From the sequence record MH595538.1: DNA of 64,000 nucleotides; one strand, given 5' to 3'. The notes under the pieces were generated by a model. It saw nothing but the letters and a program-made list of their open reading frames with translations, did not search any database and was not told the DNA's origin. Below, in pieces: positions 4,568 through 47,161 of the stretch. The position numbers and the translations under genes are program-made. Each line of letters begins with the position of its first letter. Positions within the stretch are counted from its first letter, which is position 1.

Positions 4568-5461
4568 ATGACGCAAACATTAGATGATATTCGAGTACTT
4601 AAACGCAATGGTAAATTGGAACCAGTAGACCTGGATAAGATTCACCGCGTATTACATTGGGCTGCTGAAGGCCTAGCCGGTATCTCAATATCCGACGTCG
4701 AATTAAAAGCTCACGTACAGTTCTTTGACGGCATCGAGACTAAAGACATCCATGATCTGTTAGTCAAAGCGGCAGCTGAGCTCATTACCGCAGAAGAACC
4801 AGACTATCAGTACTTCGCTGCACGCCTAAAGCTATTCTCATTGCGCAAAGAAGCATACGGTCAGTTTGAACCACCCAAACTGGTTGACCACATTAAAAAC
4901 ATGATTGACATTGGCAAGTATGACATGGAAATACTTGGCATGTATACGCCAGAAGATTTTGAATACTATGAAGGCATCATCAATCACTGGAATGACATGA
5001 ATTATGCTTACGCAGCCATGGAACAATTCTCTGGTAAATACTTAGTCAAGAACCGTGATACTGGCCGTATATATGAGACCCCTCAATTTATCAATATCAT
5101 GGCCCCTTTGACCATGTTTGGTAAATATCCAGAGCCTCAGCGTCGTGAACTTGTAACGGATTTCTATCAAGCTTTGGTTGACGGTAAGTTATCTCTACCA
5201 ACACCTATTATGTCAGGTGTGCGAACACCTACTCGCCAATTCAGCAGCTGTACTCTTATCGATTGTGATGATACTCTAGAGTCTATTATTGCGACCACTG
5301 GCGCTATTGTCCGCTATGCGGCTAAGCGAGCAGGCATTGGTATCAACGCAGGTCGTATTCGCGGTATTGGCTCTCCTATCCGTGATGGAGAAGCAGTATC
5401 GACAGGGGAAGTTGGTTTCCTTAAATTGTTTAACTCGGCAGTGGGATGCTGCTCACAGGGT
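4568..5461 (+). CDS. nrdA: Ribonucleotide reductase class Ia alpha subunit, exon 1 (with ATP cone)
   Basis: ATP cone VLKRNGKLEPVDLDKI; PTPIMSGVRTPTRQFSSC; ends CSQG at the U of the splice site. Confidence 0.95.
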
Positions 5462-5915
5462 GAATATTGCCCCGCATAGAGGTAACTCTATGTTGTAAAC
5501 TCCTTTAATTGCTGGGACTCCCTAAAGCTTGCTTGCCTCTTTGAGGAGCCGAAAGGCAGAAACAAGTAGCAAGATGGGCTAAGACGATAGTAAGTCTAAG
5601 GTCTTGATAATGGGACATCAGCCTTCGCATCAAGTAATGTGATTCAACGACTATCGAAAGCTTAACCTGAGAAGAAATATCTCGGGGGATGATAAGCTTA
5701 CCTGTGGGTAAGTGAAGCGAGTAGAGTACGGCCCAAGCGGGTGGGTTCCCAATCCCTTAAATGGAAACAAGGAGGGTCCTTGATTTGGTAACAGAATCAA
5801 GGATCGTGATATAGTCTCGTCAGTCAAACTTATCCCTTTCGGTTTGACATTCTATGGAAACATAGAGCTGCAGGTAATGCTGCGGACTGGTCTAGCGAAC
5901 CAGTTGAAGATTACG
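5462..5915 (+). mobile_element. Group I intron (IA-like, no ORF, 454 nt) in nrdA
   Basis: Removal restores CSQG|GVRKGSAT and a 762-aa NrdA; 5' exon ends in U, intron ends in G; P1 GGGU/GCCC with U.G pair; core elements AATTGCTGGGA (P), CAACGACTA (R), GATATAGTCT (S). Confidence 0.93.
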
Positions 5916-7310
5916 GGTGTAAGAAAGGGATCAGCAACTACCTTTTTCCCGATATGGCACATCGAAGCCCGTCAATTAATGGAACTTAAAAACAACCGTG
6001 GTGTTGAAGAAAACCGTGTTCGTACTATGGACTATGGTTTCCAGATTAACCGTTTCTTCTACGAGCGCCTACAGCGTGGTAAGACTATTCGTTTATTCTG
6101 TCCTTCAGAAGTTCCTGGGCTATACGAAGCATTCTTCCAAGATCAAGCTGAGTTTGCAAGACTGTATGAAAAGTATGAAAAGATGCCTCACTTGCGTCAT
6201 CATGATGTTGCCGCTAAAGATCTATTCGGTACATTGATGCAGGAGCGCGCTGGTACAGGCCGTATCTATATACAGCACGTCGACCATACAAACATGTACG
6301 GTAATTTCATTGAAGAAGAAGCGCCAACGTTCATGTCTAACCTGTGTGTAGAAATCACACTGCCTACTAAGCCACTCAAGTTTGATAACGACCCAGAAGG
6401 TGAAATTGCTCTATGTACTTTAGCGGCATTTAACCTTGGCGTGATTACACTCGAAGAGTTCCCTCGTTTGGCTGAACTGGTTGTGCGTTTCCTAGATGCG
6501 CTATTAGACTATCAAGATTATCCTTCTGAAGCAGCACGTAATTCATCGATGAAGCGCCGTACTTTAGGGGTTGGCATCATCAACTATGCATACTGGATCG
6601 CTAAGAATGGATTTAAGTATTCAGACGGCAGTGCAAACAACATGACTCACCTTTGGATTGAGAACATGCAGTACAGCCTAATGAAAGCATCAGTTCAGTT
6701 GGCAAAAGAGAAAGGTGCTTGTCCTGCGTTCAATCAAACTAAGATGGCCAAAGGTATTCTCCCGATTGATAATTACAAGCGTGAAGTCGATGAACTGCAT
6801 ACCCAAGAACTAACTTGCGATTGGGAAGGTCTGCGTGCCGATATCGCTAAGTATGGTATGCGTAACTCTACTATGTCTGCGTTCATGCCTTCTGAAACAT
6901 CATCTCAGATTGCTAATGCAACAAACGGCATTGAGCCACCTAACAAGCTTATGACTCGTAAGGCATCTAAAGACGGTATTCTTTCCCAGGTTGTACCTGA
7001 CGTCGAGAACTTACGTGACTCTTATGAGCTTCGTTGGAACATGCCAGACAACATTGGTTATATTCACCTAGTTGGCATTATGCAGAAGTTCGTATGTCAG
7101 GCAATATCTGCGAATACGAACTACGATCCTGCTAAGTTCCCAGGCGGAAAAGTGCCAATGAACGTTATGCTTAAAGAACTCATGACGTGTTATAAATATG
7201 GTGTTAAAACTCTGTACTATCATAACACGGAAGACGGTAGCAACGACCCAGTAGCTAACGCTATTGAGAAAGAAGACGAAAGCTGCGGCGGTGGTGGCTG
7301 TAAGATTTAA
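5916..7310 (+). CDS. nrdA: Ribonucleotide reductase class Ia alpha subunit, exon 2
   Basis: SNLCVEI (thiyl-radical Cys), LCTL, PSETSSQ, KTLYY, C-terminal CGGGGCKI redox tail. Confidence 0.95.
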   Translation, partial: GVRKGSATTFFPIWHIEARQLMELKNNRGVEENRVRTMDYGFQINRFFYERLQRGKTIRLFCPSEVPGLYEAFFQDQAEFARLYEKYEKMPHLRHHDVAAKDLFGTLMQERAGTGRIYIQHVDHTNMYGNFIEEEAPTFMSNLCVEITLPTKPLKFDNDPEGEIALCTLAAFNLGVITLEEFPRLAELVVRFLDALLDYQDYPSEAARNSSMKRRTLGVGIINYAYWIAKNGFKYSDGSANNMTHLWIENMQYSLMKASVQLAKEKGACPAFNQTKMAKGILPIDNYKREVDELHTQELTCDWEGLRADIAKYGMRNSTMSAFMPSETSSQIANATNGIEPPNKLMTRKASKDGILSQVVPDVENLRDSYELRWNMPDNIGYIHLVGIMQKFVCQAISANTNYDPAKFPGGKVPMNVMLKELMTCYKYGVKTLYYHNTEDGSNDPVANAIEKEDESCGGGGCKI

Positions 7311-7387: not shown

Positions 7388-8092
7388 GTGTCTAAACAGG
7401 TTATCTTCAAAGCAGGTCCAACAAACTACCTTAATCAACCAATGTTCTTCGGCGACTCTGTATCAACCGCTCGCTATGATCAGCAGACATATCCGTTCTT
7501 TGAAAAGCTTATCGAAAAGCAGCTTTCATTCTTTTGGCGACCTGAAGAAGTAGATGTCTCTGCAGACCGTCGCGATTGGCAAGGACTCTCTAAAGCGGAG
7601 AAACATATCTTTATCTCTAATCTTCAGTATCAGACACTGCTAGATTCTATCCAAGGCCGTAGCCCCAATATCGCATTCTTGCCAATCACCTCAGTACCTG
7701 AAGTAGAGACATGGATTGAAACCTGGTCATTCTCAGAAACGATTCACTCTCGTTCGTACACGCATATTATGCGTAACATCCTCACAGGTGAAGAAATGGA
7801 CGAGGTGTTTAATGGCATTACTACCATTCCTGAAATCATTGCTCGCGCCGAGCGTTTTGGCCGTGCTTACGAAGAACTGATTGAATGCAACAATGCTCTG
7901 CTGCAGTCTAAAGTAGACGTACCTAACCGAGCTGAATTGGAGCGTGAACAAAAACGTAAGTTCCTGCGTGCCCTTGTAACAGTAAACGGTTTAGAAGCTT
8001 TAGCATTCTACGTATCATTTGCATGCTCATGGGCATTTGCCGAACGTTCTATCATGGAAGGTAACGCTAAGATCATTAGACTCATCGCCCGT
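7388..8092 (+). CDS. nrdB: Ribonucleotide reductase class Ia beta subunit, exon 1
   Basis: [45 protein letters not shown]. Confidence 0.95.
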
Positions 8093-9230
8093 TAATATGG
8101 CGGCTTCATGGAGTGATCCATGAATGCACACCTCGTGAAATCAGGGGACTCCGGTAACAGGAAATCCTGAGGTTGCTCTATATCAAATCACCTCCATATA
8201 AAACGTTTTGGTTTTATAGCGAGAGGTTTTATATGAAATGATTTGTTATGGTGAAATATGGATGGATCATAAAGAAAGACCTGATGATTATATTGTCAGT
8301 AATTTTGGCAGGGTCTTTTCCAGAAAAAGTTGTATGATGTTAAAGCAGTCACTAACCAAGGCAGGATATCTAACTTATGGGAGTAGGTTAGGATCGGTCC
8401 ATCGTTTGATTGTGACGCATTATTTAGGACCCATTCCCAAAGGAATGGTAGTTAATCATAAAAATGGAATTAAGACAGATAACTGGATTGATAACCTAGA
8501 GATAACTACTCATTCTGCTAATACCCAACATGCTTACGATACGGGTTTAGCCAAAGGGAAAAAGGGCGCTGCTAACTCACAGGCTAAAGTAACAGAAGAA
8601 ATCATTCTTGATATTTATAAGATGTTCGAAGCTGGCTTTAGTAACCAAGACATTAGTAAAAGATACGGACTGCATGACCGCTACGTATCTCTCATAAGAC
8701 ATGGAAAAAGATGGAAGTATCTGTATGTAAGATACGGTAAGACTTTCCCACGATCGTATGAATTTGTCTTTCGAAAAGAACAGATTCTTATGGCAAGGGA
8801 ACTATTACTCAAGGGCCATAACAATTTAACTATTGCAATGGCAACCGGAATAGAGAAGTCTAACATATCCAGATTCCGACATGGAAAAATGAATGCTTGG
8901 TGTGAGTGGATGGCAATATACGACAGAGCAACCGCAACGACTATCGAAAGCTTAACTTGAGAAGAAATCTCTCGAGGGATGATAAGCTTACCCGCGGGTA
9001 AGTGAAGCGAGTAGAGTACAGCCACAAGCTTATGGTGGTCCTGAAAGGGATAGCGGAGAAATCCGTAATGGAAGCGCGAGGGGTCTCTTATCTGGTAACA
9101 GGGTAAGAGATCATGATATAGTCTGGCCCGGCCTTAACGGCCTATCTGTGAATACACAGGTATCCTAGGTAATGCTAGGAGCAGTATATGAAACTATACG
9201 GGTGTGTTTTGCGAACACACTGAACATACG
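8093..9230 (+). mobile_element. Group I intron (1138 nt) in nrdB carrying a homing endonuclease
   Basis: Removal restores IAR|DETLHL and a 374-aa NrdB; exon ends in U, intron ends in G; P1 CCGU/GCGG; R (CAACGACTA) and S (GATATAGTCT) elements. Confidence 0.93.
8238..8960 (+). CDS. Intron-encoded HNH homing endonuclease (NUMOD4-HNH plus C-terminal HTH-like DNA-binding region)
   Basis: YIVSNFGRV (NUMOD4), VHRLIVTHY, VNHKNGIKTDNWIDNLE (HNH), HSANTQHA. Confidence 0.9.
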   Translation: MICYGEIWMDHKERPDDYIVSNFGRVFSRKSCMMLKQSLTKAGYLTYGSRLGSVHRLIVTHYLGPIPKGMVVNHKNGIKTDNWIDNLEITTHSANTQHAYDTGLAKGKKGAANSQAKVTEEIILDIYKMFEAGFSNQDISKRYGLHDRYVSLIRHGKRWKYLYVRYGKTFPRSYEFVFRKEQILMARELLLKGHNNLTIAMATGIEKSNISRFRHGKMNAWCEWMAIYDRATATTIESLT

Positions 9231-9650
9231 GATGAAACTTTACATTTAGCCGGCACACAGTACATGATCAATGAACTGGCTAAAGGCGCTCAAGGAGCTG
9301 AATGGAAAGAGCTCTTTGAAGAAATGCGTGATGAGCTAGGTGAGATCATGCTAGCTATTGCCATGCAGGAAAAAGAGTGGGGTCGCTACCTGTTTAAAGA
9401 CGGTACGATGATCGGCCTTAACTCAAACATTATAGACCAGCTTATCGAGTACTTCTGTAATATCCGTTGTGCGGCTATTAAACTAGATAAGCCTTTTGCA
9501 GAACAGAAAAAGAATCCAATTGGATGGTTTAACTCTTGGATTCAATCCGCCGGTGTTCAAGTAGCACCGCAAGAAACAGAGCAGTCTTCTTACCTTGTCG
9601 GTCAAGTAGATTCTACTATTGATGAAGACGCTCTAGACATGGATCTTTAA
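9231..9650 (+). CDS. nrdB: Ribonucleotide reductase class Ia beta subunit, exon 2
   Basis: DETLH iron ligands, EKEWGRYLF, VAPQETEQSSYLVGQ with the conserved Tyr. Confidence 0.95.
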   Translation, partial: DETLHLAGTQYMINELAKGAQGAEWKELFEEMRDELGEIMLAIAMQEKEWGRYLFKDGTMIGLNSNIIDQLIEYFCNIRCAAIKLDKPFAEQKKNPIGWFNSWIQSAGVQVAPQETEQSSYLVGQVDSTIDEDALDMDL

Positions 9651-35685: not shown

Positions 35686-37128
35686 ATGTTAAATGAATTA
35701 AAAATCCACGTTCTTGATTGTCGCGATATTGAATACTTCATGCGCCATGGCGAGATGGCCAAAGAGCCTTCTCATCTGGGCTATGTTGACGCATTGACCC
35801 CTGCAATGATGGGTGCCCTCAAATCACGCAGTGCAGCTGGCATCATGGAAGATCTTAAGAAGATCCGTGATAAAGGCGCTGACCATATCATCGGTCAGTT
35901 CTTCAAGAAGTACGGTCATGCATCCATTGGCCAAAACTCTGGCATCGTACAGATCTACATCGAAGGCTGTTCTATGCAGGCAGCAAAAGCCATACAGGAC
36001 TTTGTCTTCTATAACGGCCAAGAGTGTAGCACTCGTTATATCGACTTCACTGAATTCACTGGTGTCTATCCTCAGACAATGACGGATGAAATCAAAGAAG
36101 CGTTTGATGCTGCTTATGGTTATGCGAAGAACTTTTATACTGACGCACTAGAGTGGAAGAAAGAGGAACTAAAGAAGGAGATTCCTAACTATCCTTCTGT
36201 CTTTGGTAATGCCAGTGATGCTAAACGAGATAACATCATCAATGCAAAGGCATTCGATGTATGTCGCTCACTATTACCTACTGGTGCTCGCACCATGGTT
36301 GCATGGCATTCGCTGATTGAAACATTGACGTATCGCCTACCAGAACTAATGGCACATGAGCTTGAAGAAGTCGTCTATATTGCAGCGGCGCTTCATAAAG
36401 AACTCAGAAATAAATATCCTGATGCGATCAGTCAAGTTAACCCTGAAGTGCTTCTATACAACCAGGACAATCGTCAAGAACGAGAGTCTGCAGAAATCCA
36501 ACCTATCGAAGATTGCATTCTGGATACGTCTTTGCTAACTCCAAATGCACTAGGTAAACTGGCATTAGCGCGCAAGATGTCTAAACAGCGTTTATCCAAT
36601 CATTTAAAGTTGGAAGGCGTTGTTCGTTGGTCAATGAACATAGATTACGGCAGCTGGCGTGATCTGCAGAGACATCGCGAGATCTATACAAGCGAACCAA
36701 TCTTGACAGCTACGAATGGCTTCCATGAATGGTACTATGATGAACTCAAAGACATGCCTGGCTTTGATGCACGAATGAAAACAATGCGTCATCATATCAA
36801 CACTGTGAACAAGCTGGTTGGCCGCAATACCCGCACTGCTGCTTATGTCATTCCAATGGGCTTCAAAGTCAGTGCGACCATCGTATGTACGCTACCTCAG
36901 CTGGTTTATATCGGTGAATTGCGCAGTGGGCACACTGTACATCCTACGGCACGTAAAGCAGTGCTTGACATGATCGATCAGTTAACTGAAAAGACCAAGG
37001 AGACATTCCGCGAATTAGATCCTAGTTTTAATTTCAATGCATTCCTTCAGTTCAATTTTACTACAGACGCCCCTCGCTTATTCTACGCTAAGCGCGGCGA
37101 TCAAAACTTTGATGAAATACTCAAGTAA
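35686..37128 (+). CDS. thyX: Flavin-dependent thymidylate synthase, tandem two-domain form
   Basis: YGHASI, QECSTRY, RSLLP, WRDLQRHR, YVIPMG, ELRS..TVHP. Confidence 0.88.
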   Translation: MLNELKIHVLDCRDIEYFMRHGEMAKEPSHLGYVDALTPAMMGALKSRSAAGIMEDLKKIRDKGADHIIGQFFKKYGHASIGQNSGIVQIYIEGCSMQAAKAIQDFVFYNGQECSTRYIDFTEFTGVYPQTMTDEIKEAFDAAYGYAKNFYTDALEWKKEELKKEIPNYPSVFGNASDAKRDNIINAKAFDVCRSLLPTGARTMVAWHSLIETLTYRLPELMAHELEEVVYIAAALHKELRNKYPDAISQVNPEVLLYNQDNRQERESAEIQPIEDCILDTSLLTPNALGKLALARKMSKQRLSNHLKLEGVVRWSMNIDYGSWRDLQRHREIYTSEPILTATNGFHEWYYDELKDMPGFDARMKTMRHHINTVNKLVGRNTRTAAYVIPMGFKVSATIVCTLPQLVYIGELRSGHTVHPTARKAVLDMIDQLTEKTKETFRELDPSFNFNAFLQFNFTTDAPRLFYAKRGDQNFDEILK

Positions 37129-37189
37129 CCTAAACCAGGAGGGGTAAAACCCTCCTTTACTTTTATCTTATTTTAAAGAGAGCAATATT

Positions 37190-37540
37190 ATGCATGAAGA
37201 TTTTGAAATCATAGATTTAAGAGATGAACAAATTGCAAGTCATATCGACTTCCCCGATTTAGAAAATGTCAAGTTCACTTACGACAGTAACGACGACCTT
37301 TACTTTATCATCGGCGATGAGTGCATCAAATTCTATCTAAGCGAAGATCCTAATACAGACCCGCTAGGTCATTGCGAAGACGATTTAGACGCACTAGAAG
37401 TCATTTCTCAGTCATGGGGACTGGAAGGCGCACAAGAGTTCGCCATTGAATTCGAAAACACTGGCATCTTTGACTTAGCTAAACACGACGGAATTATTAT
37501 TCATTACCGTGATGAACATATGACACAGGAGTTATTCTAA
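37190..37540 (+). CDS. Hypothetical acidic protein
   Basis: After terminator at 37137-37156; 116 aa. Confidence 0.75.
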   Translation: MHEDFEIIDLRDEQIASHIDFPDLENVKFTYDSNDDLYFIIGDECIKFYLSEDPNTDPLGHCEDDLDALEVISQSWGLEGAQEFAIEFENTGIFDLAKHDGIIIHYRDEHMTQELF

Positions 37541-38226
37541 TGATCGGTACTTTAATTATTGCAGGCTGCCTACTAGTTTGCGCATTCATTGTTTTTCAAG
37601 GCATTAAATCCAATCGTCCTGAACTAACTGAAGATGAACTAGCTCAGAAAAGATGGCAGAAGATGGTTGAAGAGTCAGATGCTGAACTCGAAGAAGTCAT
37701 GGACAAACTAGACCGCGTCATTCATCATCGCACTGAGGAAGAGGGCTATTCGGACGGTGACTTCGATAAACAGGAACTTATGGGTCAGTATTTAGTTGAC
37801 CATCCCGATTCTGCTAAAGAAGAACCTGGCGATAAATCCTTGCAGATAGAGGTCAGTGACATAGAAGTTGTCTTCCACACGTTTAGCAATCAGTACGAAT
37901 CGGTAACGGTGAAAGGAGCTTTCAATGAGCCTATTGAAGGAGCGGAGCTAATCGAAAACGTATTCCCTGATCTACATAAGCATATCGTAAACGGCATGCG
38001 CATAAACAAACTAGCTCCTGGCGAAGATCCCAATGCTTACTTTGCTGGACCTGGCGCTCGAGGAAAAACCGTCTATCGCTATACGGTTATTAAGAAAGAA
38101 AATCCTCGTTTAATCAAACGTGACGATTACTATTATGGGCTACAGAGCTTTAGCACAAAACCAGTGAGTAAAGACAGTCCATTGATGAGTGCTGAAATCG
38201 TTATTGAGCTCACTCCTTATAATTAA
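37540..38226 (+). CDS. Membrane-anchored protein
   Basis: N-terminal TM (IGTLIIAGCLLVCAFIVF); TAATG overlap. Confidence 0.75.
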   Translation: MIGTLIIAGCLLVCAFIVFQGIKSNRPELTEDELAQKRWQKMVEESDAELEEVMDKLDRVIHHRTEEEGYSDGDFDKQELMGQYLVDHPDSAKEEPGDKSLQIEVSDIEVVFHTFSNQYESVTVKGAFNEPIEGAELIENVFPDLHKHIVNGMRINKLAPGEDPNAYFAGPGARGKTVYRYTVIKKENPRLIKRDDYYYGLQSFSTKPVSKDSPLMSAEIVIELTPYN

Positions 38227-38237
38227 AGGGTTTACTT

Positions 38238-38756
38238 ATGTTCCTTCCTCAAACAGAAGGCGTTGATCATATCAATATCTATACAAAGAGCAATACGGAA
38301 TTAGGTCGTATACTCACTAACATGTACTGGATGGACCCTCCAGTGAGGATGGGACATCATGGTTTATTTAGAACAATAGAAGGATGGTGGTACTATGTGA
38401 AGATAACGCAGTTGCTAGGAGATAAATATTGGAATGATAAAAGAGAGGTCTTATTTGACATGCAGGTCGGAAAAGGATTTGAAGTTAAAAAGATTGCTCG
38501 AAAGATTATCTCCAATATAGATCCAAAGAAACTTAAGCGATGGGATCATCATAAACATAAGAGCATGATGCTCATGGCTTTTCAAGCGAAGCTAAACGCA
38601 CTTCCTGAATTACAAAGACTACTAAAAGAGTCGACGTTACCCTTTGATCATTATTATGTCTATGGGACAGGAGAGAAAGCTATTCGTCGAGAAGCAGATG
38701 AACGCCATGCATGGCAAATTGCTGCTTGGACAAAACTCAGAGAGGGGCTTCAATAG
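38238..38756 (+). CDS. NADAR-superfamily protein
   Basis: ILTNMY...G..FRTIEGWWYYVK resembles LSNFY..F.S.EH.Y...K; MMLMAFQAKL..LPELQRLL resembles M..AL.AKF.Q...L...L. Confidence 0.65.
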   Translation: MFLPQTEGVDHINIYTKSNTELGRILTNMYWMDPPVRMGHHGLFRTIEGWWYYVKITQLLGDKYWNDKREVLFDMQVGKGFEVKKIARKIISNIDPKKLKRWDHHKHKSMMLMAFQAKLNALPELQRLLKESTLPFDHYYVYGTGEKAIRREADERHAWQIAAWTKLREGLQ

Positions 38757-38787
38757 TCCCTTTTATTAATGCACTAAAGGAAATATC

Positions 38788-39657
38788 ATGAAAACTATTC
38801 TTACGGTACTGCTTGCAACACTGACTTTGGTTGGTTGCGGGGATGCAATCAATCTGCCTGCTAACTATAAGGCTATCGTAATCGATAAAGATACAGGTCC
38901 TGACTTCAACAGGACATACAGCGGTACCAGTCTATACATTCCATATGGATTCCTTGAACGAGATCGTGCGCTATCAGTTGAAACATCACAAGGGGCTTAT
39001 TCGTTCAGTGCCGATGTTCCGATCAATGCATCTAATGGCCTGCCGGTTACGTTTAAATTCAACCTGGTTTTCCGTTTGCGCGAAGATATGGCATCATATC
39101 AAAAGGCAGTGGCGGGATATCGTTCTCAGCCATCTAAACTTAGCAGCTACTTGCGCTACATAAGCACTGAGAATATGGCACGTATTACACTAGCGCCTAT
39201 TGCAGTAGATACGGCAAGCAATGTCATTAACGGCCTAAACATGAGCATTGAAGATATCATGCTTAACATGCCAGCTGTGCGCGACTCCGTGCGTACTCAG
39301 TTTGATCAGATTGTTGCTGAATCACCTATTGAGATCATGCACCTGACCATGGATAATCCAATCTGGCCAGAGTCTGTTATTTCTCGCAAGCAAGATTTAC
39401 AAAAGATCAAGGATGATGAAAAGATTCAGCTTGATCGCCTAGCTATGGAAAAACGCCAGTTGGATAAAGAACATGCATTTGCTCTTGTCAAGGCAACTAA
39501 ACAGCTAGAACTGGATGAGAAATATGCAACTCGTTACGACGGTCCTAATGGCGAAATGTTATTGAAACAGCAGGTCGTTAAAGTCATGGAAACCTGCGCT
39601 GAAAAAGAGACAGGCTGCAACATTGTCATCACTGAAGGACTTGCTCCATGGAAGTAA
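38788..39657 (+). CDS. SPFH/band-7 family lipoprotein
   Basis: Lipobox LVGC after a hydrophobic signal; SPFH-like core and C-terminal coiled coil (NPIWPESVISRK...). Confidence 0.75.
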   Translation: MKTILTVLLATLTLVGCGDAINLPANYKAIVIDKDTGPDFNRTYSGTSLYIPYGFLERDRALSVETSQGAYSFSADVPINASNGLPVTFKFNLVFRLREDMASYQKAVAGYRSQPSKLSSYLRYISTENMARITLAPIAVDTASNVINGLNMSIEDIMLNMPAVRDSVRTQFDQIVAESPIEIMHLTMDNPIWPESVISRKQDLQKIKDDEKIQLDRLAMEKRQLDKEHAFALVKATKQLELDEKYATRYDGPNGEMLLKQQVVKVMETCAEKETGCNIVITEGLAPWK

Positions 39658-39944
39658 AGAAGAAGTACGCCCCTTGGTTTATCATCTTCTGTGCAGCAAT
39701 TGCAATGGGTCCTATTGGGGCTCTTTACATGTACGCTGCCGGACATATCTTTGCAGACAAGATTGTCAATCCTACGGTTGATTTTGTTGCCGGTGAAGAA
39801 GAACAGGTCATCGTCATTGATCATAATGAGAAACCAGATCTAACGCAGATCAAAACCGATACTACTAATTTTGTTCGCAAAGAAGAAAGGAACTTAGACG
39901 ATGAATTCAAGAAAAGCCTTGTCGAGTATACCGAAAGCCAATAA
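39648..39944 (+). CDS. Small membrane protein
   Basis: N-terminal TM; overlaps the SPFH gene. Confidence 0.65.
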   Translation: MEVKKKYAPWFIIFCAAIAMGPIGALYMYAAGHIFADKIVNPTVDFVAGEEEQVIVIDHNEKPDLTQIKTDTTNFVRKEERNLDDEFKKSLVEYTESQ

Positions 39945-40314
39945 GGAAGGACTCGGACAAATAAAGTTCGTAGCCGCTGTTATCATTATGGTTGTCTTAC
40001 TTGGAGTATTTGCAGGATTTGCTAAAGCACATACCTTGGAAGATAACCTGCCTGATTTCTATAGCTGTGACATTCTTATGAACGACCATCGTTATACGCC
40101 CGAAAAGGTTTATCAGGTCATGGATGTATTTAACTTAGAAACTGAAAAGTCGATGCACAATTTCATCAGAGATTGTGACATGTTAAATACCGGCAAGGGA
40201 TACTGGGATCAGTACATGGAAGATACCCGATATTATCATCGCCTCATGGAAGGACTGAGAGACTGGCGTGGTAACAAAGAACCAATCACAATTATCATTA
40301 AACCACCACTATAA
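39901..40314 (+). CDS. Membrane-anchored/exported protein
   Basis: Hydrophobic segment FVAAVIIMVVLLGVFAGFAKA; terminator at 40317-40339. Confidence 0.65.
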   Translation: MNSRKALSSIPKANKEGLGQIKFVAAVIIMVVLLGVFAGFAKAHTLEDNLPDFYSCDILMNDHRYTPEKVYQVMDVFNLETEKSMHNFIRDCDMLNTGKGYWDQYMEDTRYYHRLMEGLRDWRGNKEPITIIIKPPL

Positions 40315-40356
40315 TAATGAGGGGCGTGAAGCCCCTCATGCAAAGGACTTATTATT

Positions 40357-41343
40357 ATGAGACAAGAAAAACTAACTCTATTATCTGATATTCGATTCAC
40401 AGCAGCATGGCTTGCTATTGTTCCAGGCCGCGATGTCAATAGCCGTATTGTATTATCCTCTACGGGCATTCTAGATGGCCGTTATTCATTAAAGGATGTC
40501 TATAATGGCCTTTTCCATGGGAACGCTACATGGGCTTTAGAGCGCGATTTAAAGAACTTGCAAGATATCTATTGCCGTGAAGAAAAAGGTAATAAAATCA
40601 CTACGCTTGTATTTAAGAGACAACAGCCTAAAGCAGGTGAAGTAGTCATGGAAGTCGATTGCTGTCATGTTGACGATACTCTAAAGATAACCGAAACCTG
40701 GAAATCAGGCACTCACCAGAAACTGATCATGAGTGACGGTATATGCAAACAGAAACGTTTCTTTAATGCTGCAGGTACAATTGTCAAAGCAGAGAATCGC
40801 TGGTACGGCCTTAATGAACTCGGCGACGTCAGAGTGCGTGATGACAAAACCTATGATCCGGAAACTGGAGAAATGGTTCATTTTGGCAAGTCAATGAAAG
40901 TCATCGAACGCGACGATAAGAACCGTCCTATCTGTGTAGACATCATCTCTGATGAAAACTACAGGCAGAAGGAAACTAAGCGGTTTAAGGTATCTTACGT
41001 TAGCAATGGCAATGGCCTGACTGTGCAGCGCATGAAACACATTGACGAGCACGGTAAGAAAACCAGTATGGCATTCTATGTCGAAACATCACAGCTTATC
41101 TTCAATAACACAGATATGATGGCGGACGTGAAGATCAAATTCAAGCGCTTGCCAGACGGCAGTAATGTAATTGAAGAAAAAGTCAATGGTAACGGATCAG
41201 TTGAAACTTACCGTTATATTCTGGGTCGAAATAATGAGATTGCTAAGATCAAGAAAAAGCTAGTAACTCATCATGGCTCTGTTAATGAATTCCTGTTATT
41301 CAAACTAAAGAATACAAAGGGAGTGAATTCTGTAAGTAAGTAA
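40357..41343 (+). CDS. Beta-rich protein with degenerate YD/RHS-like strands
   Basis: KTYDPETGE, ERDDKNRP, TYRYILGRNNEI patterns. Confidence 0.6.
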   Translation: MRQEKLTLLSDIRFTAAWLAIVPGRDVNSRIVLSSTGILDGRYSLKDVYNGLFHGNATWALERDLKNLQDIYCREEKGNKITTLVFKRQQPKAGEVVMEVDCCHVDDTLKITETWKSGTHQKLIMSDGICKQKRFFNAAGTIVKAENRWYGLNELGDVRVRDDKTYDPETGEMVHFGKSMKVIERDDKNRPICVDIISDENYRQKETKRFKVSYVSNGNGLTVQRMKHIDEHGKKTSMAFYVETSQLIFNNTDMMADVKIKFKRLPDGSNVIEEKVNGNGSVETYRYILGRNNEIAKIKKKLVTHHGSVNEFLLFKLKNTKGVNSVSK

Positions 41344-41363
41344 AATAATAACTGGAGTAGACT

Positions 41364-41873
41364 ATGACAGCTTTGTATGAATATAACCTCATAAGGGCTG
41401 CGATGAGGCAATCTAAATATGTAGATGAGTCCATACGGGAAATTTATGCCTCGCATCTGATGGAAGGTTTTCACTCAGTCAAGTTTAAGTTCTTGGTGCG
41501 ATATACAGAAGGAAATCAATGGAAGGATATTGCTGACGGACTCGTATACTCAGACAACATGCTGATGATTCATAATGCGATCTATCAGACGGTTGACGTA
41601 GAATTAGGTTATAAAGGCTACTTGCCTAATTTCCTTGTCGAACGCAACGACATGTATTTCATGGATGTTGTCATAGATGACGAGCTAATGTTCTCTGCGC
41701 CCTTGAATTACGTGCTGACTATGTCATTTATCTATCGGGACCAAAGAGAACCACTAGTTTATGAGATGATCCCTAGACCATTCATCCTTGCTAATCGATC
41801 AGGAGGGACAATGAATATTCCTCAGTGTCTAGAATTGATAACTCATCCAGAGACTAACGAGAACATGCACTAA
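41364..41873 (+). CDS. Hypothetical protein
   Basis: GGAG RBS; bidirectional hairpin at 41875-41906. Confidence 0.75.
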   Translation: MTALYEYNLIRAAMRQSKYVDESIREIYASHLMEGFHSVKFKFLVRYTEGNQWKDIADGLVYSDNMLMIHNAIYQTVDVELGYKGYLPNFLVERNDMYFMDVVIDDELMFSAPLNYVLTMSFIYRDQREPLVYEMIPRPFILANRSGGTMNIPQCLELITHPETNENMH

Positions 41874-41929
41874 ATATACTCTGTAGCCTTTCGGCTACAG
41901 AGTATAAGTTTTAACGCTAAAAATGAATC

Positions 41930-42148
41930 CTACAGGACACAGCCGCCGCTTTCACAGCCGCCTAAATCTAGATCAGACAAATCTAGCTCGTCAAGCTCTT
42001 TCTTATTCTCCAAGACATCTTTTGCCTCGGTATAAAGACTCAGTACTGGCGAGTCTTCTTCTAGAAAGACACTGGCATCTTTGGCAATATGGCCGCAGAT
42101 AGCCTCTAGTTCATCGACAGAAAAATCTGCAAAGCGTCCGTTACTCAT
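41930..42148 (-). CDS. Small acidic protein ending in an NrdA-like CX4C tail
   Basis: GGAG RBS on the minus strand; ends LDLSDLDLGGCESGGCVL; own terminator. Confidence 0.75.
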   Translation of the reverse strand: MSNGRFADFSVDELEAICGHIAKDASVFLEEDSPVLSLYTEAKDVLENKKELDELDLSDLDLGGCESGGCVL

Positions 42149-42234
42149 TTCGTTTACTCCGGTTATTCAGTTTTAATTTTTAAGTTCTGGCAAAAGATTT
42201 ATATGACAGAACATCACACTAATGGAGATAGTTT

Positions 42235-42762
42235 ATGACCACATTGGTTGTTACAAAAGAAGCAGTCTATATAGACCATCGTGCAACCCGAGGACCTATG
42301 ATGGAAGACGGGCATGTCAAGTATGTTCGCTGGCCTAAAAAGGATCAGATTTTCTTCATCGTAGGCAAAGCTCAAACATCCAGGGACGCCATCAATTTCC
42401 TGATTACCGGGGAATGGAGGGATGAGGAAACCAAAAATAAATTCGTCGGTATGGAACATGGCTGCGAAGTCATCGTTTTAGACAGTGAAGGATTCGTTAA
42501 ATTTTCCGAACTGGAATGGAACGATGAAAAACAGACCGTAGTAGTTAAATCTATCGGAGATGTCTTTACTCCCGAAATGGAAAGCATTTATTGCTTAGGG
42601 TCTGGATCCCCATTTGCATACGGGGCTTATCATGCGAGCAATGGAAACATGGACATTGTGTATCGCACTATAAATATGATTAGTGGCTGTACCAGCGCAA
42701 GCTACGATCGAGTATGTCGCGCAACACGCAAAATTAAAACACATAAGGGTATCGCATGTTAA
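42235..42762 (+). CDS. Second N-terminal-threonine protease, HslV/proteasome-beta-like
   Basis: MTTLV, YIDHR, HVK, IVGK, LGSGSPFAYGA, GCTS. Confidence 0.75.
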   Translation: MTTLVVTKEAVYIDHRATRGPMMEDGHVKYVRWPKKDQIFFIVGKAQTSRDAINFLITGEWRDEETKNKFVGMEHGCEVIVLDSEGFVKFSELEWNDEKQTVVVKSIGDVFTPEMESIYCLGSGSPFAYGAYHASNGNMDIVYRTINMISGCTSASYDRVCRATRKIKTHKGIAC

Positions 42763-43352
42763 TTCTACTAGATCAAACGGTTTATGTCTTCGCCAATAAA
42801 AAGAATAACCCTCTAGATAAAGACAATGTCCTTTCGGTAAATGAAAGCGATAACTTCATTATGATTACTGAAGCTCCTAAGAAAATACAGGAACATACAA
42901 GACTACTGGATCAGCATGGCTTCAAGATAGAAGGAGAGATACGAAGAGAGCGTCGTGAAAATAAAAGGCGTCCCTTTAGTGATGAAGACATCGCATTTAC
43001 TGATGACTCAGACACCATTGTTTTCTGCTTAAATAAAAACCAAGACTTTCGTCATGGACTGCAGTTTCACGGAATTCTATTTTCTAAAGGAACCATTGCG
43101 TGCGCTAAGATAGCGGCAGGTGACACCAGTGCACAGTCGGCATTTGTAGACCGTTTCTTTAAAGGATGGGCTGTTGCTAAACTAATGGACAGCAAAGGCA
43201 AATTAAGGGATCTGGATGCCGATAAGATCATGACCGAGTTCTCTGAAGTGGCTAATAGTCAGTTGAAAGAACCTGCAAGGCTGATCGGCAAATATGTCTT
43301 TACTATCGACAAAGAAGGCAAGCCTAAATACGAGTTTGTGGAGATCAAGTAA
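42756..43352 (+). CDS. Partner of the second Ntn protease; possible inactive Ntn-fold subunit
   Basis: Overlapping start; similar size and secondary-structure order, no catalytic Thr. Confidence 0.5.
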   Translation: MLILLDQTVYVFANKKNNPLDKDNVLSVNESDNFIMITEAPKKIQEHTRLLDQHGFKIEGEIRRERRENKRRPFSDEDIAFTDDSDTIVFCLNKNQDFRHGLQFHGILFSKGTIACAKIAAGDTSAQSAFVDRFFKGWAVAKLMDSKGKLRDLDADKIMTEFSEVANSQLKEPARLIGKYVFTIDKEGKPKYEFVEIK

Positions 43353-43978
43353 TGTGGACACCAAACCCTATTCGTATCACTAATGGAAAGGTTTTTACTG
43401 AGCAAGTAATCAATAATCAAAAGCTCACACTCAATGGTGTTGACCAAGGTATATTCCTGGGTGCTCTTGCAGATTTTATAATAGATTACTTTCGTATAGA
43501 AGGGACAGTAGAGCATAATTCAGCTGAAGAGATGTTCGAATGCATACGACAGTTCTATCTTGGCGCAATGCGATGGAAGGATGAAGGTCTTGCGACGCCT
43601 AAGCACAAGGTCCTGTATGTGCGCGATTCTGATGACAGATTAAGCTTTAGAGTAAAACCAAAAACCATGCTAGATTTGACCTTTCATGAACTTGGCTTTA
43701 TCAATAACAAATTTGGTCTCAGTTTCGATTATCCTCCTGTCCTTCAAAAAGAAGAGGAGTATATCATTAGTGACAATCGAAATAATAACCCGTTTGTAAT
43801 CAAGGCCCTTGTAAAATGCTACTTGCCAGATGGAGCTTATGTTGAATTTACTGATCATCCTGAAAGCAAAGATAAATGGCTAGCCGAAAACAAACATCTT
43901 ATTATAGAAGTTAAAAAGCACCATATTGTACATTCCGGCTATTTCCACAGCATTCAAGCAACTGCTAAATCCATGTAA
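43352..43978 (+). CDS. Hypothetical protein
   Basis: TAATG overlap; terminator at 43984-44006. Confidence 0.75.
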   Translation: MWTPNPIRITNGKVFTEQVINNQKLTLNGVDQGIFLGALADFIIDYFRIEGTVEHNSAEEMFECIRQFYLGAMRWKDEGLATPKHKVLYVRDSDDRLSFRVKPKTMLDLTFHELGFINNKFGLSFDYPPVLQKEEEYIISDNRNNNPFVIKALVKCYLPDGAYVEFTDHPESKDKWLAENKHLIIEVKKHHIVHSGYFHSIQATAKSM

Positions 43979-44021
43979 CTAATAAGGGTCTCCTTCGGGA
44001 GACCTTAACTTATTTTTAAAT

Positions 44022-44040
44022 CTATATTATCTGAGTGTAA
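44022..44040 (+). promoter_or_regulatory. Putative early-type promoter motif
   Basis: CTATATTATCTGAGTGTAA after a terminator. Confidence 0.5.
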
Positions 44041-44060
44041 TAAACCAAGGAGACAATAGT

Positions 44061-44561
44061 ATGTCTAAGTTAAATGTAATTCAATTCTGTATCACACGAT
44101 GCCTGGATGTCAAGCCAATGACACTTAACCAGCTTCACTCTATTCTGACTCTATTCAATGATATCTGGAGTAAACAAACCATTCGTCAATGGCTAAATAA
44201 AACATCGGACGTGGAATGCAACGAGTCTTATGCCAAAGCTAGTCCAACGTATTACTATAAGCACGGCAATGTTGCTATAGGCAATGTTCCGGAAGATCTA
44301 CCTATCGACATGGCATTACTGCTTTGTACAAGATATGAACTGGATCGAATGTATACCGGAATGACGGTTAAGACCAATCAGCTCAGATCAAAGATTATGA
44401 GCATTGCTCCTGCAAGTGCCATCGAAAGTCGATTGACTGAATTAAAGGTCAGTCAACTAATCGCCAATCAAGAAAAAATAATCTCAGTCTATCGTGAAAT
44501 GAACAAAGAAGATGAAGCTTTCTTCCTAGCAAGGAAACTGCTTGAAGACCATAATTTTTAA
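44061..44561 (+). CDS. Hypothetical protein, possible winged-helix N-terminus
   Basis: AAGGAG RBS; helix-helix-strand pattern (weak). Confidence 0.7.
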   Translation: MSKLNVIQFCITRCLDVKPMTLNQLHSILTLFNDIWSKQTIRQWLNKTSDVECNESYAKASPTYYYKHGNVAIGNVPEDLPIDMALLLCTRYELDRMYTGMTVKTNQLRSKIMSIAPASAIESRLTELKVSQLIANQEKIISVYREMNKEDEAFFLARKLLEDHNF

Positions 44562-45083
44562 ATGTACTTAATATCCGAGGAGACGATGATGCGTCAATTA
44601 AGAATGGATAAACAACCGAAAGATTCTTCCTATTGTATGGCCAGTTGTGTCGCTGCTATCATAGGACAGGACATCAATATCACTTGTCGCGAAATAGGTG
44701 ATAAGTATTTAGAAATTGCTAACTATGATCATCACAAGGCATTGATGGCAGTTACGGCATATGCGCAAGCTAAAAACTGTGAGCTTCAGCCTACGACAGA
44801 AATACTGCTCAATAAGACCGGATACTGGATAATCTCAGTGCCTTCTATTAACGTGCCTAATGCACGTCATGCGGTAGTCGTCCAGGTCGAAGTACATTAC
44901 GGACATATGACAATGATTGTTCATGACCCTCAGCGAAACACGGGCAAGTTCTATTATGGCAATGAACTACAAGCTGACTTTGATCCAGGCATGTGTCGTC
45001 GCTTAGACCTGCGAGAATCGTCTCCTCTACTGTACATCAGTCACAAAGATTTTAACAAAGGCCCATTTAATCCGGGCAAATAA
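44562..45083 (+). CDS. C39-like papain-fold cysteine peptidase
   Basis: QPKDSSYCMASC (Q..C), HAVVV, VHDP catalytic triad pattern. Confidence 0.75.
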   Translation: MYLISEETMMRQLRMDKQPKDSSYCMASCVAAIIGQDINITCREIGDKYLEIANYDHHKALMAVTAYAQAKNCELQPTTEILLNKTGYWIISVPSINVPNARHAVVVQVEVHYGHMTMIVHDPQRNTGKFYYGNELQADFDPGMCRRLDLRESSPLLYISHKDFNKGPFNPGK

Positions 45084-45099
45084 CCAAGGGAACATTAAT

Positions 45100-45438
45100 A
45101 TGCGAAACGAAGTATCACGCGCTCCAGCGAACAACCCAAACGAAATGACAGTGATTCTAAAAACGAATCATTATCGTATCGATAAACGCACTGGCAATAA
45201 AGAAATTATCAGTACTGAGTTTACCGGACCTTATTATCCAGATTTCCTAGAAGACTGGATTATGCGCGTTACAGAGCGTTCTGGCCAGGTATACGTCGGC
45301 TATGAAATTATGGATGTTAAAAGTGTACGTAAGACTGCACTAAACAATGGTCTGATTCAACGCCCTTATGACCGCTGGCTTGTCACTTACGATGATGGCA
45401 GTACTGGCTTTGCTTACACAATCCCTAAGCGAGGATAA
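45100..45438 (+). CDS. Hypothetical protein
   Basis: AAGG RBS, 112 aa. Confidence 0.72.
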   Translation: MRNEVSRAPANNPNEMTVILKTNHYRIDKRTGNKEIISTEFTGPYYPDFLEDWIMRVTERSGQVYVGYEIMDVKSVRKTALNNGLIQRPYDRWLVTYDDGSTGFAYTIPKRG

Positions 45439-45441
45439 GTT

Positions 45442-45813
45442 ATGACCTTAGAAGAAATGTTTGATTTCCTGTGTGAAAATGTAAACAGCGCTAGCGTTGT
45501 ATATCTTCCAGATTCTGGAATTGCCGACGAAGAATTCTTTGAAGAGTTTGTTCGCCATCAGAACACGATGGATGACGCCTCTTGCATTACTCTCATTCCA
45601 TGCACTAAGACCGCCTGTACTGGCCGTGCGCTTGCAGAGTATGCACAGACAACTGCAAAGAACAGCCTCTTTGTAGTTTACTATGACAAACTCTATGGAG
45701 TCATGCCTCGCATAAGAGATGATCAATTTGATCCTTATGAGATCGACGGCGTATTCAAGTCTTTCGTCTATCATGATAAAGAACGCAAAGTCATTAGCTG
45801 GCCAAACGCTTAA
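45442..45813 (+). CDS. Hypothetical protein
   Basis: GAGG RBS, in operon. Confidence 0.72.
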   Translation: MTLEEMFDFLCENVNSASVVYLPDSGIADEEFFEEFVRHQNTMDDASCITLIPCTKTACTGRALAEYAQTTAKNSLFVVYYDKLYGVMPRIRDDQFDPYEIDGVFKSFVYHDKERKVISWPNA

Positions 45814-45878
45814 CATAAAACGTCCATGAGTAATCGCTTGTGGACGTTACCATTTAACTAAACAAAGGACACGTAAAA

Positions 45879-46589
45879 ATGAATAACGGAGTTTACGACC
45901 ATAAGAAAAACCTAGCATCGGTTTCTCTATTCAATCGCATCGCCTACAACTGGCCAATCAAGCACGATGAAGCTGACTATGATGACTTCATGGCAGTTGT
46001 CAATAAGCAAGCTGGTCTTCTAGAAAGCGAGATCGCGGAACTAGATAAGAACCTGGCTGATGGTAAATGCTGCCGAGACGATTATGCTGACATTCTATAT
46101 GTTGCTTACGGTCTAGCTTATCGCGTTAACGGTAACCGTCAATTGCTTCAGAAGCTTGAAGTATGCGAATGCGGTAAAGATAAAAACCTTACTAGCGGTA
46201 ACATCGTCCATACTCTGCGCACTGAACTAAGCCATGCAGTGACTGCTTTCGAAGATCGCCGTTACAATTCAGCAATTAGCAGCATCACATGCCTAATCAA
46301 CATTGTGGAAATCTACGTCATGAACGAAGACGAAGAAACACCACAAGCGGATATTGAGCTTGTCTGTGCGGCTAACCTAGCTAAGTTCGATGACAACCTT
46401 GCAGATGCTGAACTTACTGTAGATGCTTATAAAGCGAAAGGTATTGAAACTGAATATCGCATCAACACTGTCGATGCAGTACAGTACTTCATCAACGTCT
46501 CTAGTAAAGATCAATGGATCGGTAAGAAGGACTTCCCTAAAGACAAAGTTCTTAAGAGCCACAAGTGGTCTGAACCTGTCTTTAATTAA
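45879..46589 (+). CDS. MazG-like (PRA-PH family) nucleoside triphosphate pyrophosphohydrolase
   Basis: ESEIAEL...DDYADILYVAYG and VCAANLAKF motifs. Confidence 0.75.
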   Translation: MNNGVYDHKKNLASVSLFNRIAYNWPIKHDEADYDDFMAVVNKQAGLLESEIAELDKNLADGKCCRDDYADILYVAYGLAYRVNGNRQLLQKLEVCECGKDKNLTSGNIVHTLRTELSHAVTAFEDRRYNSAISSITCLINIVEIYVMNEDEETPQADIELVCAANLAKFDDNLADAELTVDAYKAKGIETEYRINTVDAVQYFINVSSKDQWIGKKDFPKDKVLKSHKWSEPVFN

Positions 46590-46594
46590 TCGCC

Positions 46595-47152
46595 ATGGAC
46601 AGACCAATACTCCTCGCTACAGAGGATCCCGGTGCGATATTCTGGGAAGACTATGCGAATACCAACAGACTCTGTCAGTTACTTGACTTCATCAGAGTGG
46701 TTACAGAGCCAGCTCGATTTAACTCTATCACTCATACCTTGGTAGAAGAAAAGAAGGTGAGTTTTTACGGGGCGGTTAAATATTCCGGTCCTAAGGGTCG
46801 CGGCATTCGCATAATCAAACACCCTAGAAATTTTCAAGAGACTTGTTTTTACGCATCGCCTCGTTACGCCACAATGGATAATGGGACTGAAGTACCATGG
46901 AAAAACTGGACGGGCATTGAAGACGAATTAGACTTTCATGCCTTTCATGTCACTATTCAAGGAATGCACTATACCGAAGCTTTCTTATGTAAAGAGTCCA
47001 TGTCCGAGTCTCTAATCAATCTTGTCTATGAATATGGAATGCAGGACTATACATTGAGTCATCTGCATTCTCTGTCCGTATACAAGAAAATCGAATATGT
47101 TAAATCAGTCGTTGATTACAACGATGAACTTGAAGATCTAATTATTGCATAG
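46595..47152 (+). CDS. Hypothetical protein
   Basis: 185 aa, in operon. Confidence 0.7.
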   Translation: MDRPILLATEDPGAIFWEDYANTNRLCQLLDFIRVVTEPARFNSITHTLVEEKKVSFYGAVKYSGPKGRGIRIIKHPRNFQETCFYASPRYATMDNGTEVPWKNWTGIEDELDFHAFHVTIQGMHYTEAFLCKESMSESLINLVYEYGMQDYTLSHLHSLSVYKKIEYVKSVVDYNDELEDLIIA

Positions 47153-47161
47153 GAGCATAAA

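Follow-up and report, generated by a model that had tools for sequence, protein, structure and literature searches.

ORF278c is a small protein gene in a 64,000-nt stretch of DNA, here termed the window, that is 100% identical to Vibrio phage BONAISHI (MH595538.1; window position 1 is record position 224,968). The gene is real, and the last residues of its 72-amino-acid (aa) product appear to copy the flexible redox tail that ends NrdA, the alpha subunit of class I ribonucleotide reductase (RNR); the match is far beyond chance. Only the tail is RNR-like. PF02867, the ten-stranded catalytic barrel of RNR alpha, gives no match in ORF278c, and the head of the protein (residues 1–55) shows no likeness to the C-terminal regions of RNR alpha or to any other part of it. 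With no barrel domain, ORF278c is not a member of the NrdA family but carries only that family's tail.

RNR is the bottleneck in the supply of DNA precursors. After each turnover, a cysteine pair in the alpha tail reduces the active-site disulfide and is then itself re-reduced by thioredoxin or glutaredoxin. Re-reduction by way of this flexible tail is slow and has been poorly visualised. The reading preferred here, which is plausible if short of probable, is that ORF278c represents a detached dithiol tail of the RNR alpha type that acts in trans on RNR or on host redoxins.

BONAISHI, a jumbo phage with a genome of 288,967 bp, infects Vibrio coralliilyticus. It encodes multisubunit RNA polymerases and a tubulin-like protein, and is therefore grouped with the phiKZ-like jumbo phages. 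The BONAISHI record was analysed in pieces and not as one assembled genome, and all feature coordinates are window positions unless they are marked as record positions.

The gene and its tail

The original prediction, made from the nucleotide sequence without database searches, described a 72-aa open reading frame (ORF) with its own ribosome-binding site and terminator, about 35 kb from nrdAB. This description is accurate. The ORF is present, translates to a protein that ends ...LDELDLSDLDLGGCESGGCVL and is coding by codon usage. Its codon-usage log-likelihood is 0.23 per codon, compared with a mean of 0.17 (standard deviation 0.05) for long ORFs; 39 spurious nested ORFs reach at most 0.126, and the five other frames of ORF278c are all negative. 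The ATG is preceded by a GGAG Shine–Dalgarno sequence, and nrdA is ~34.6 kb away. Beyond the 3′ end of the gene is a 14-bp hairpin that is far more stable than its shuffled versions on both strands, with folding energies of −28.1 and −24.0 kcal/mol (z = −5.8 and −6.3; none of 200 shuffles as good). It is likely a bidirectional terminator common to ORF278c and ORF277. A simple terminator scan did not call this hairpin because of its short T-run. Such scans, and those for sigma-70 promoters, are uninformative for BONAISHI, a phage with its own multisubunit RNA polymerases.

The NrdA-type redox tail claimed for this protein is borne out as well. NrdA relatives (n = 120) were gathered with the C-terminal half of BONAISHI NrdA, and all of them end in CX4C plus exactly two residues. 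Position 3 of the spacer is Gly, position 4 is Gly or Ala and the last residue is aliphatic, likewise in 120/120. ORF278c has every one of these properties. The spacers seen in alpha tails are AGGA, AGGG, EGGA, GGGG, GSGA, ESGA, EGGG, VGGA, ADGG, QDGG, TSGG and DSGG, and that of ORF278c is ESGG; the last residue of the compared alpha tails is always I, V or L, and in ORF278c it is L. Vibrio NrdA tails read DDDCAGGGCKI or DDCAGGACKI. The solved Escherichia coli NrdA tail reads ...DDGCESGACKI and is identical to the ORF278c tail at six of ten positions. As the E. coli tail carries CESGxC, the G-C-E-S-G-x-C of ORF278c is nearer to this bacterial tail than to the ESCGGGGCKI of the phage's own NrdA.

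A position-specific profile was built from 22 distinct 12-residue NrdA tails. The end of ORF278c scores +7.6 bits with this profile, compared with a mean of −23 (standard deviation 5.6) for background ORF C-termini, and random 12-mers reach 7.6 bits in 8 of 200,000 cases (~4e-5). Over the whole phage record, which has 282 coding-like ORFs, a CX4C-X2 end is found in NrdA and ORF278c only; whole-record profile scores are 38.4 for NrdA and 10.1 for ORF278c, with the next best at −5.0.

The closest counterparts of the tail come from other viruses. A scan of IMG/VR for G-G-C-x-x-G-G-C-x-x-stop gave 141 DNA matches, most of which are tiny chance ORFs in GC-rich DNA. Nineteen are in-frame ORFs of at least 60 aa, and RNR alpha is the only recurrent family among them. 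Its four members (PF02867, E = 4e-32 to 6e-83) end ...ELNLGGCADGGCSV, ...EQQIGGCQDGGCSV, ...ETEMGGGCTSGGCSI and ...VEEVGGCDSGGCKL. They represent three lineages that are 27–31% identical mutually and ~30–32% identical to BONAISHI NrdA, and each lies next to an RNR small subunit, within a nucleotide-metabolism module of ordinary type. True alpha tails of this GGC type score 7.0–15.8 on the NrdA-tail profile. The last ten residues of ORF278c are identical at eight positions to the last of the four tails given above, that of locus L022.

In all 120 close relatives of BONAISHI NrdA, acidic residues directly precede the first Cys and the end is invariably Lys-Ile, the pattern of tails of the E. coli, Vibrio and Neisseria type. 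The GGC-type viral tails end SV, SV, SI and KL, and have neither the Lys-Ile end nor acidic residues immediately before the first Cys. These features therefore define a subtype of tail and not the motif itself. GG before the first Cys, a preceding hydrophobic residue and the missing Lys-Ile end thus appear to be hallmarks of a genuine and recurrent subtype of RNR alpha tail, here termed (GGCxx)2, which to our knowledge has not been described.

Two other viral proteins were seen in the same census. One is an A-type iron-sulfur (Fe-S) carrier (PF01521; L029:10277-10648) with an extended C-terminal run of the (GGCxx)n type, GGCSSGGCGSGGGGCGSGGCSA. The other (L008:1259-1633) is a second free-standing small protein, 124 aa in length, that has no Pfam match and ends ...ITLGGCVDGGCNY. 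Unlike ORF278c, it is not acidic. Its surroundings are a helicase/nuclease replication module, and the examined part of the locus, its first 6 kb, contains no RNR.

A further element of the original prediction, an NrdB-tail-like DLSDLDL placed ahead of the redox tail, has to be given up. When residues 30–62 of ORF278c are aligned to the last 40 residues of phage NrdB, the similarity is no better than that of composition-preserving shuffles (z = 0.2; 850 of 2000 as good), and the stretch is internal, not C-terminal. A fused NrdB docking peptide is thus rejected as an effect of acidic and leucine-rich composition. The GGC-type alpha tails, too, have acidic and hydrophobic residues ahead of their first Cys (...ELNLGGC, ...EQQIGGC, ...VEEVGGC). 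What stands of the overall interpretation is the redox tail, by its geometry and its identities with the tails of L022 and E. coli NrdA.

ORF278c itself is an orphan. Only ORF278c was matched in a word-indexed search of 5.8 billion proteins, in a tblastn search of 50,697 phage records, and in pattern-plus-tblastn scans of IMG/VR, GTDB genomes and JGI metagenomes. An exhaustive phmmer search of 1.84 billion representative proteins returned ORF278c and three long PAS-repeat or tandem-repeat proteins; the three are rejected as artefacts, as their scores are sums of many weak stretches in long repeat proteins. There was no match in Pfam, PHROGs, NCBIfam, PADLOC or PDB sequences.

The protein has an isoelectric point (pI) of 4.05 and a net charge of ~−13, and contains three Cys (positions 18, 65 and 70) and one His (position 20). 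A single-sequence AlphaFold model has a mean predicted local distance difference test score (pLDDT) of 65, with helices at residues 11–25 and 34–53 that reach 70–80. Residues 51–72 have a pLDDT of 41–52 and no secondary structure. The tail is therefore predicted to be disordered, a single-sequence model being weak evidence for disorder. A Foldseek search with the model gave nothing significant in the PDB, where only generic helical hairpins were returned, and only the protein's own entry in BFVD.

Possible roles

In the mechanism proposed, ORF278c would be an expressed protein of two parts, an acidic helical head of orphan character and, C-terminal to it, a copy in form of the class I RNR alpha redox tail, and would present the dithiol/disulfide module of that tail in trans. 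Host redoxins would recognise and reduce the ORF278c tail, the tail would enter the active site of RNR alpha, and the acidic head would supply docking specificity. ORF278c might so form an auxiliary electron route that sustains turnover of RNR whenever its own tail has left the active site for re-reduction. That the protein is redox-active, that redoxins recognise it, that it reaches RNR and in which direction it acts are all inferred; on direction, we lean slightly toward an auxiliary electron route over a competitor or brake. Doubtful, though it merits mention, is the broader idea of an RNR alpha redox tail that the phage makes as a diffusible protein in its own right, an electron-shuttle module or mimic that acts on RNR or on the host thioredoxin/glutaredoxin system and tunes deoxynucleoside triphosphate (dNTP) synthesis during infection.

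Electron transfer between RNR subunits does occur. The flexible alpha tail, which carries electrons to the active site, is reduced by thioredoxin or glutaredoxin, and its disorder plays a part in the binding of redoxins (PMC5704485). In addition, a second reductant that acts on the active site while the oxidised tail is away leads to higher RNR activity in vitro (PMC4078304).

The phage has a complete RNR, with both nrdA and nrdB, and the protein ends cited in the original prediction (ESCGGGGCKI for NrdA, EDALDMDL for NrdB) are found as described. The ~400-nt insert in nrdA has a full-length group I intron match that is below threshold, scoring 32 bits (E = 1.3e-5) where the gathering score is 50. 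Aligned to E. coli NrdA, one nrdA ORF covers residues 5–295 and the other residues 295–761; they abut exactly, and the spliced alpha therefore has its own tail. A self-splicing intron that lacks an endonuclease gene is the probable identity of the insert; in the record, the two ORFs are annotated as two separate alpha subunits. The nrdB insert contains a homing-endonuclease-like gene with HNH_3 and NUMOD4 matches, and a very weak group I signal at 9030–9144 (E = 0.74). The alpha gene of L022 is also split, and an HNH_3 match is found among the ORFs of the four viral RNR loci. No thioredoxin or glutaredoxin family member was found among the window proteins or the four other small CxxC-containing ORFs of the genome, and none is reported in the BONAISHI genome paper. 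Host redoxins therefore presumably serve the phage RNR.

Several points weigh against a role of ORF278c in ribonucleotide reduction. As no search returned a homologue, there is no conservation of the cysteines and no co-occurrence with nrdAB to lean on. The gene is 35 kb from nrdAB, in a block of accessory genes without counterpart in the closest relative, vB_VhaM_pir03. The gene table of that phage has no best match to AXH71010–71029 (record ORF269–ORF288, window ~35686–48037), and the whole block of twenty proteins, almost all of them orphans, is therefore specific to BONAISHI. The tail of ORF278c has no penultimate Lys and no acidic residues immediately before the first Cys, where it has GG, and it ends VL. 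The (GGCxx)2 motif of the IMG/VR census is found on the Fe-S carrier and on unrelated ORFs, and not on RNR alpha alone. As modelled, the head gives no pointer to a binding partner. The tail possibly arose by tandem local duplication, which would allow it a simple origin. Moreover, the phage alpha has its own tail, which should have a large local-concentration advantage over any free tail.

An unlikely explanation, but one to be taken seriously, is that ORF278c is an acidic host-takeover or counter-defence protein with a target other than RNR. It might mimic a nucleic acid or inhibit a basic host protein, and its tail might be convergent, a redox switch or the outcome of a 15-nt duplication. 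The strong negative charge and low pI would suit such a protein, as would its very small size, its orphan status and its place in a jumbo phage's hypervariable accessory block. ORF278c is also the sole minus-strand gene within a run of ~twenty plus-strand genes, has its own signals and shows no linkage to nrdAB. The DNA of the tail consists of two 15-nt units that have a 10-nt exact repeat, GGCGGCTGTG, in common, which suggests a possible local duplication. Identical codon choice in both units has a chance probability of ~0.05, as estimated from codon frequencies, and true RNR alpha tails of the (GGCxx)2 subtype use differing codons. On the other hand, the tail matches RNR alpha specifically, in its register, in the make-up of the spacer and in the terminal residue, a likeness that is unique in the genome. 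ORF278c has no match among defence/anti-defence models, and no positive evidence points to another target.

It is improbable that Cys18, His20, Cys65 and Cys70 form a Cys3His site for a metal or an Fe-S cluster, with the tail folded back on helix 1 and the protein serving as a carrier or a sensor, or the site as a structural zinc site. Three Cys and one His in only 72 residues are compatible with this, as is a Cys pair on a Gly-rich flexible tail, and the viral A-type Fe-S carrier has an extended tail of related type. However, metal-binding families have no fold or sequence similarity to ORF278c, which has no match to the PF01521 (Fe-S_biosyn) domain. The AlphaFold model has the tail away from helix 1, and the CX4C-X2 end-geometry is better explained by an RNR tail than by a generic metal site.

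Another context is provided by the divergent neighbour ORF279, whose kinship to the peptidase HslV was overlooked in the original prediction. This protein is annotated as hypothetical in the record. It starts Met-Thr-Thr and matches PHROG 1040 (E = 1.1e-10) and solved HslV chains (E = 7e-4 to 6e-3, residues 14–145); an AlphaFold model has a pLDDT of 38, too low for use. ORF278c might then be a partner of the ORF279 peptidase that docks on a proteasome-like ring, in the manner of an HslU tail, as activator, regulator or substrate. No HslU is recognised in the window, and the predicted helical head and disordered tail with a hydrophobic end would fit. C-terminal 8–12-mers of HslU activate HslV by themselves (PMC6429459), and HslV without HslU is found in other jumbo phages (PMC7823757; Erwinia phage RAY gp116).

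Nevertheless, a partnership with ORF279 does not hold up in detail and is also improbable. The likeness to an HslU tail (...ADEDLSRFIL, from the annotated Salmonella locus L003) is one of composition only (z = 0.1; 858 of 2000 shuffles as good), and an HslU-tail mimic is rejected on these grounds. The 'DLS...L' of ORF278c is internal, and the protein lacks the critical antepenultimate aromatic residue of the extreme C-terminal HslU hexapeptide (for the requirement, see PMC6429459). BONAISHI provides the sole instance of the linkage. In pSal-SNUABM-04 (MT710307), the only jumbo phage inspected for this, neither of the two HslV-like genes has a small Cys-tailed neighbour. ORF277 is, like ORF278c, an orphan, and so is ORF279 at the BLAST/phmmer level, which leaves no neighbourhood conservation for such a partnership to draw on. 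A promoter-like TTTATAT is found at ORF279 and not at ORF278c. In addition, the cysteines of ORF278c would be left unexplained.

The weakest alternative, a relic or non-functional ORF that is either the captured 3′ tip of some nrdA or a chance ORF, could draw on the orphan status and on a tail subtype unlike the phage's own and Vibrio NrdA tails and like those of other viral RNR alphas, but is very improbable given the codon usage above the gene mean over the whole ORF, the negative alternative frames, and the good ribosome-binding site and terminator. Two specific origins are also rejected. The stump of a decayed nrdA might have left RNR alpha remnants beside ORF278c, and none are present within 4 kb to the left or right. 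As to a recent capture of an alpha tail, the tail DNA is identical to the four viral alpha tails at 19–22 of 33 nt, as expected from common residues, and there is no DNA-level signal beyond that. A double-glycine leader of a bacteriocin or other ribosomally synthesised and post-translationally modified peptide, brought to mind by ...DLGG ahead of Cys, is rejected as well: no NCBIfam or Pfam leader model matches, and no processing peptidase, transporter or modifying enzyme for leader peptides is found among the neighbours or in the window proteins.

The locus and its neighbours

The coordinates of ORF278c, its parts and the other features are collected in Table 1.

Table 1. Features of the ORF278c locus, the phage RNR genes and the viral RNR alphas with a similar tail (window positions; the four L-numbered loci of the last row are in IMG/VR)
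Feature	Position	Strand	Basis or remark
ORF278c (AXH71019.1, hypothetical protein), 72 aa	41930..42148	-	ORF, annotation, codon usage
Acidic head, residues 1–53, predicted helical hairpin, with Cys18 and His20	41990..42148	-	AlphaFold2 model
Acidic/leucine linker, then RNR-alpha-type tail ...DLDLGGCESGGCVL-COOH, residues 54–72, predicted disordered	41933..41989	-	AlphaFold2 and tail profile
CX4C pair Cys65-Glu-Ser-Gly-Gly-Cys70, then Val-Leu and stop codon	41939..41956	-	sequence
Two 15-nt units GGCGGCTGTGAAAGC / GGCGGCTGTGTCCTG, encoding (GGCES)(GGCVL)	41933..41962	-	sequence
Shine–Dalgarno GGAG	42157..42160	-	8 nt 5′ of ORF278c ATG, read from sequence
Hairpin, 14 bp, 4-nt loop	41875..41906	both strands	between convergent ORF277 (+) and ORF278c (-)
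Divergent intergenic region, AT-rich, 86 bp	42149..42234		common to ORF278c and ORF279
ORF279, HslV-family (proteasome-like N-terminal nucleophile) peptidase homologue, 175 aa	42235..42762	+	PHROG 1040 and PDB sequence matches
TCTATAT motif	20512, 26057, 30699, 44021, 48110, 48993, 49722; variant at 42198	+	motif recurrence
nrdA (class Ia alpha), tail ...ESCGGGGCKI	4568..7310	+	insert at 5452-5850
nrdB (beta), tail ...IDEDALDMDL	7388..9650	+	insert with HNH/NUMOD4 endonuclease 8238-8960
(GGCxx)2-tailed viral RNR alphas	L041:8696-10903, L046:9606-11816, L017:5464-7020, L022:2027-2887		IMG/VR census

The TTTATAT of the intergenic region is a variant of a recurrent motif, TCTATAT, and points toward ORF279. 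No motif of this type in the region points toward ORF278c, and no promoter motif common with ORF278c was found. TCTATAT recurs ~25–45 nt 5′ of start codons, often right behind terminator-like hairpins, and is a candidate for a promoter element of BONAISHI's own RNA polymerase.

With respect to proteolysis genes, two tandem classic AAA (PF00004) ATPases are encoded at 26120–27622 and 27688–28998, 13–16 kb from ORF279, and their C-termini are unlike HslU tails. BONAISHI also has two ClpP-like genes (record 87276–88339). A tblastn search of phage records with bacterial HslV gave only bacterial contigs filed as phages. Several of the records matched in the phage collection (among H6–H23) are short 'Escherichia/Salmonella/Listeria phage' contigs and two Salmonella whole-genome shotgun contigs with ordinary bacterial hslVU, and look like bacterial DNA within the collection.

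ORF238 (10541–12265) has weak, sub-cut-off matches to glycoside hydrolase family 18 and to a CBM5/12 carbohydrate-binding module. Such a chitinase-like protein is of note in a phage of a chitin-associated marine Vibrio.

Significance and comparison with known systems

If ORF278c does act as a detached alpha tail, this would show that such a tail can function, or be imitated, apart from the enzyme as a module of its own, and the protein would offer a small handle for structural study of the encounters of the tail with redoxins and with the active site. Its importance is limited by its occurrence in one genome, where it may be an idiosyncrasy, and by a link to RNR that rests on sequence. Phage NrdAB activity has been reported to trigger several defence reverse transcriptases via raised dNTP (bioRxiv 10.64898/2026.10.27.754916), and phage factors that tune RNR turnover would therefore bear on the phage–host arms race.

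The class I RNR alpha tail, especially that of the (GGCxx)2 subtype (L022, L041, L046 and L017), is the system that ORF278c resembles most directly. Both have CX4C with exactly two residues before the carboxyl end, Gly at spacer position 3, Gly or Ala at position 4 and an aliphatic last residue, and in both hydrophobic and acidic residues come before GGC and disorder is predicted. The differences are that ORF278c has this tail on an unrelated 53-residue acidic helical head with no catalytic barrel, is encoded 35 kb from nrdAB, and is without the Lys-Ile end of E. coli- and Vibrio-type tails. Literature searches found no described free-standing protein with an RNR alpha redox tail, and we know of none.

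Three other systems have partial likeness. The NrdB C-terminal docking peptide shares an acidic, leucine-rich composition with a stretch of ORF278c, whereas the SSYLVGQ-type segment of the phage and E. coli NrdB tails has no counterpart there. The HslU tail and the ATP-independent proteasome activators have a helical body with a flexible C-terminal tail, and ORF278c adjoins an HslV-family gene; however, the similarity is at chance level, the aromatic residue is missing in ORF278c and the HslU mechanism has no role for cysteines. The viral A-type Fe-S carrier has a Cys-Gly-rich flexible C-terminus and, like ORF278c, three cysteines in total, but differs in fold and family, in Cys spacing and in repeat number.

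With respect to function, yeast Sml1, together with Spd1, Hug1 and Dif1, provides another comparison. These proteins are small and partly disordered, and ORF278c would likewise act on RNR alpha. They differ in being eukaryotic and not viral, and none showed a sequence relation to ORF278c in any search. Sml1 carries no copy of the redox tail as far as we know, and its inhibition of RNR reportedly involves the alpha C-terminus and regeneration of the enzyme. Small eukaryotic RNR regulators such as Sml1 are, by analogy, the nearest functional counterparts of ORF278c, to which they are unrelated in sequence.

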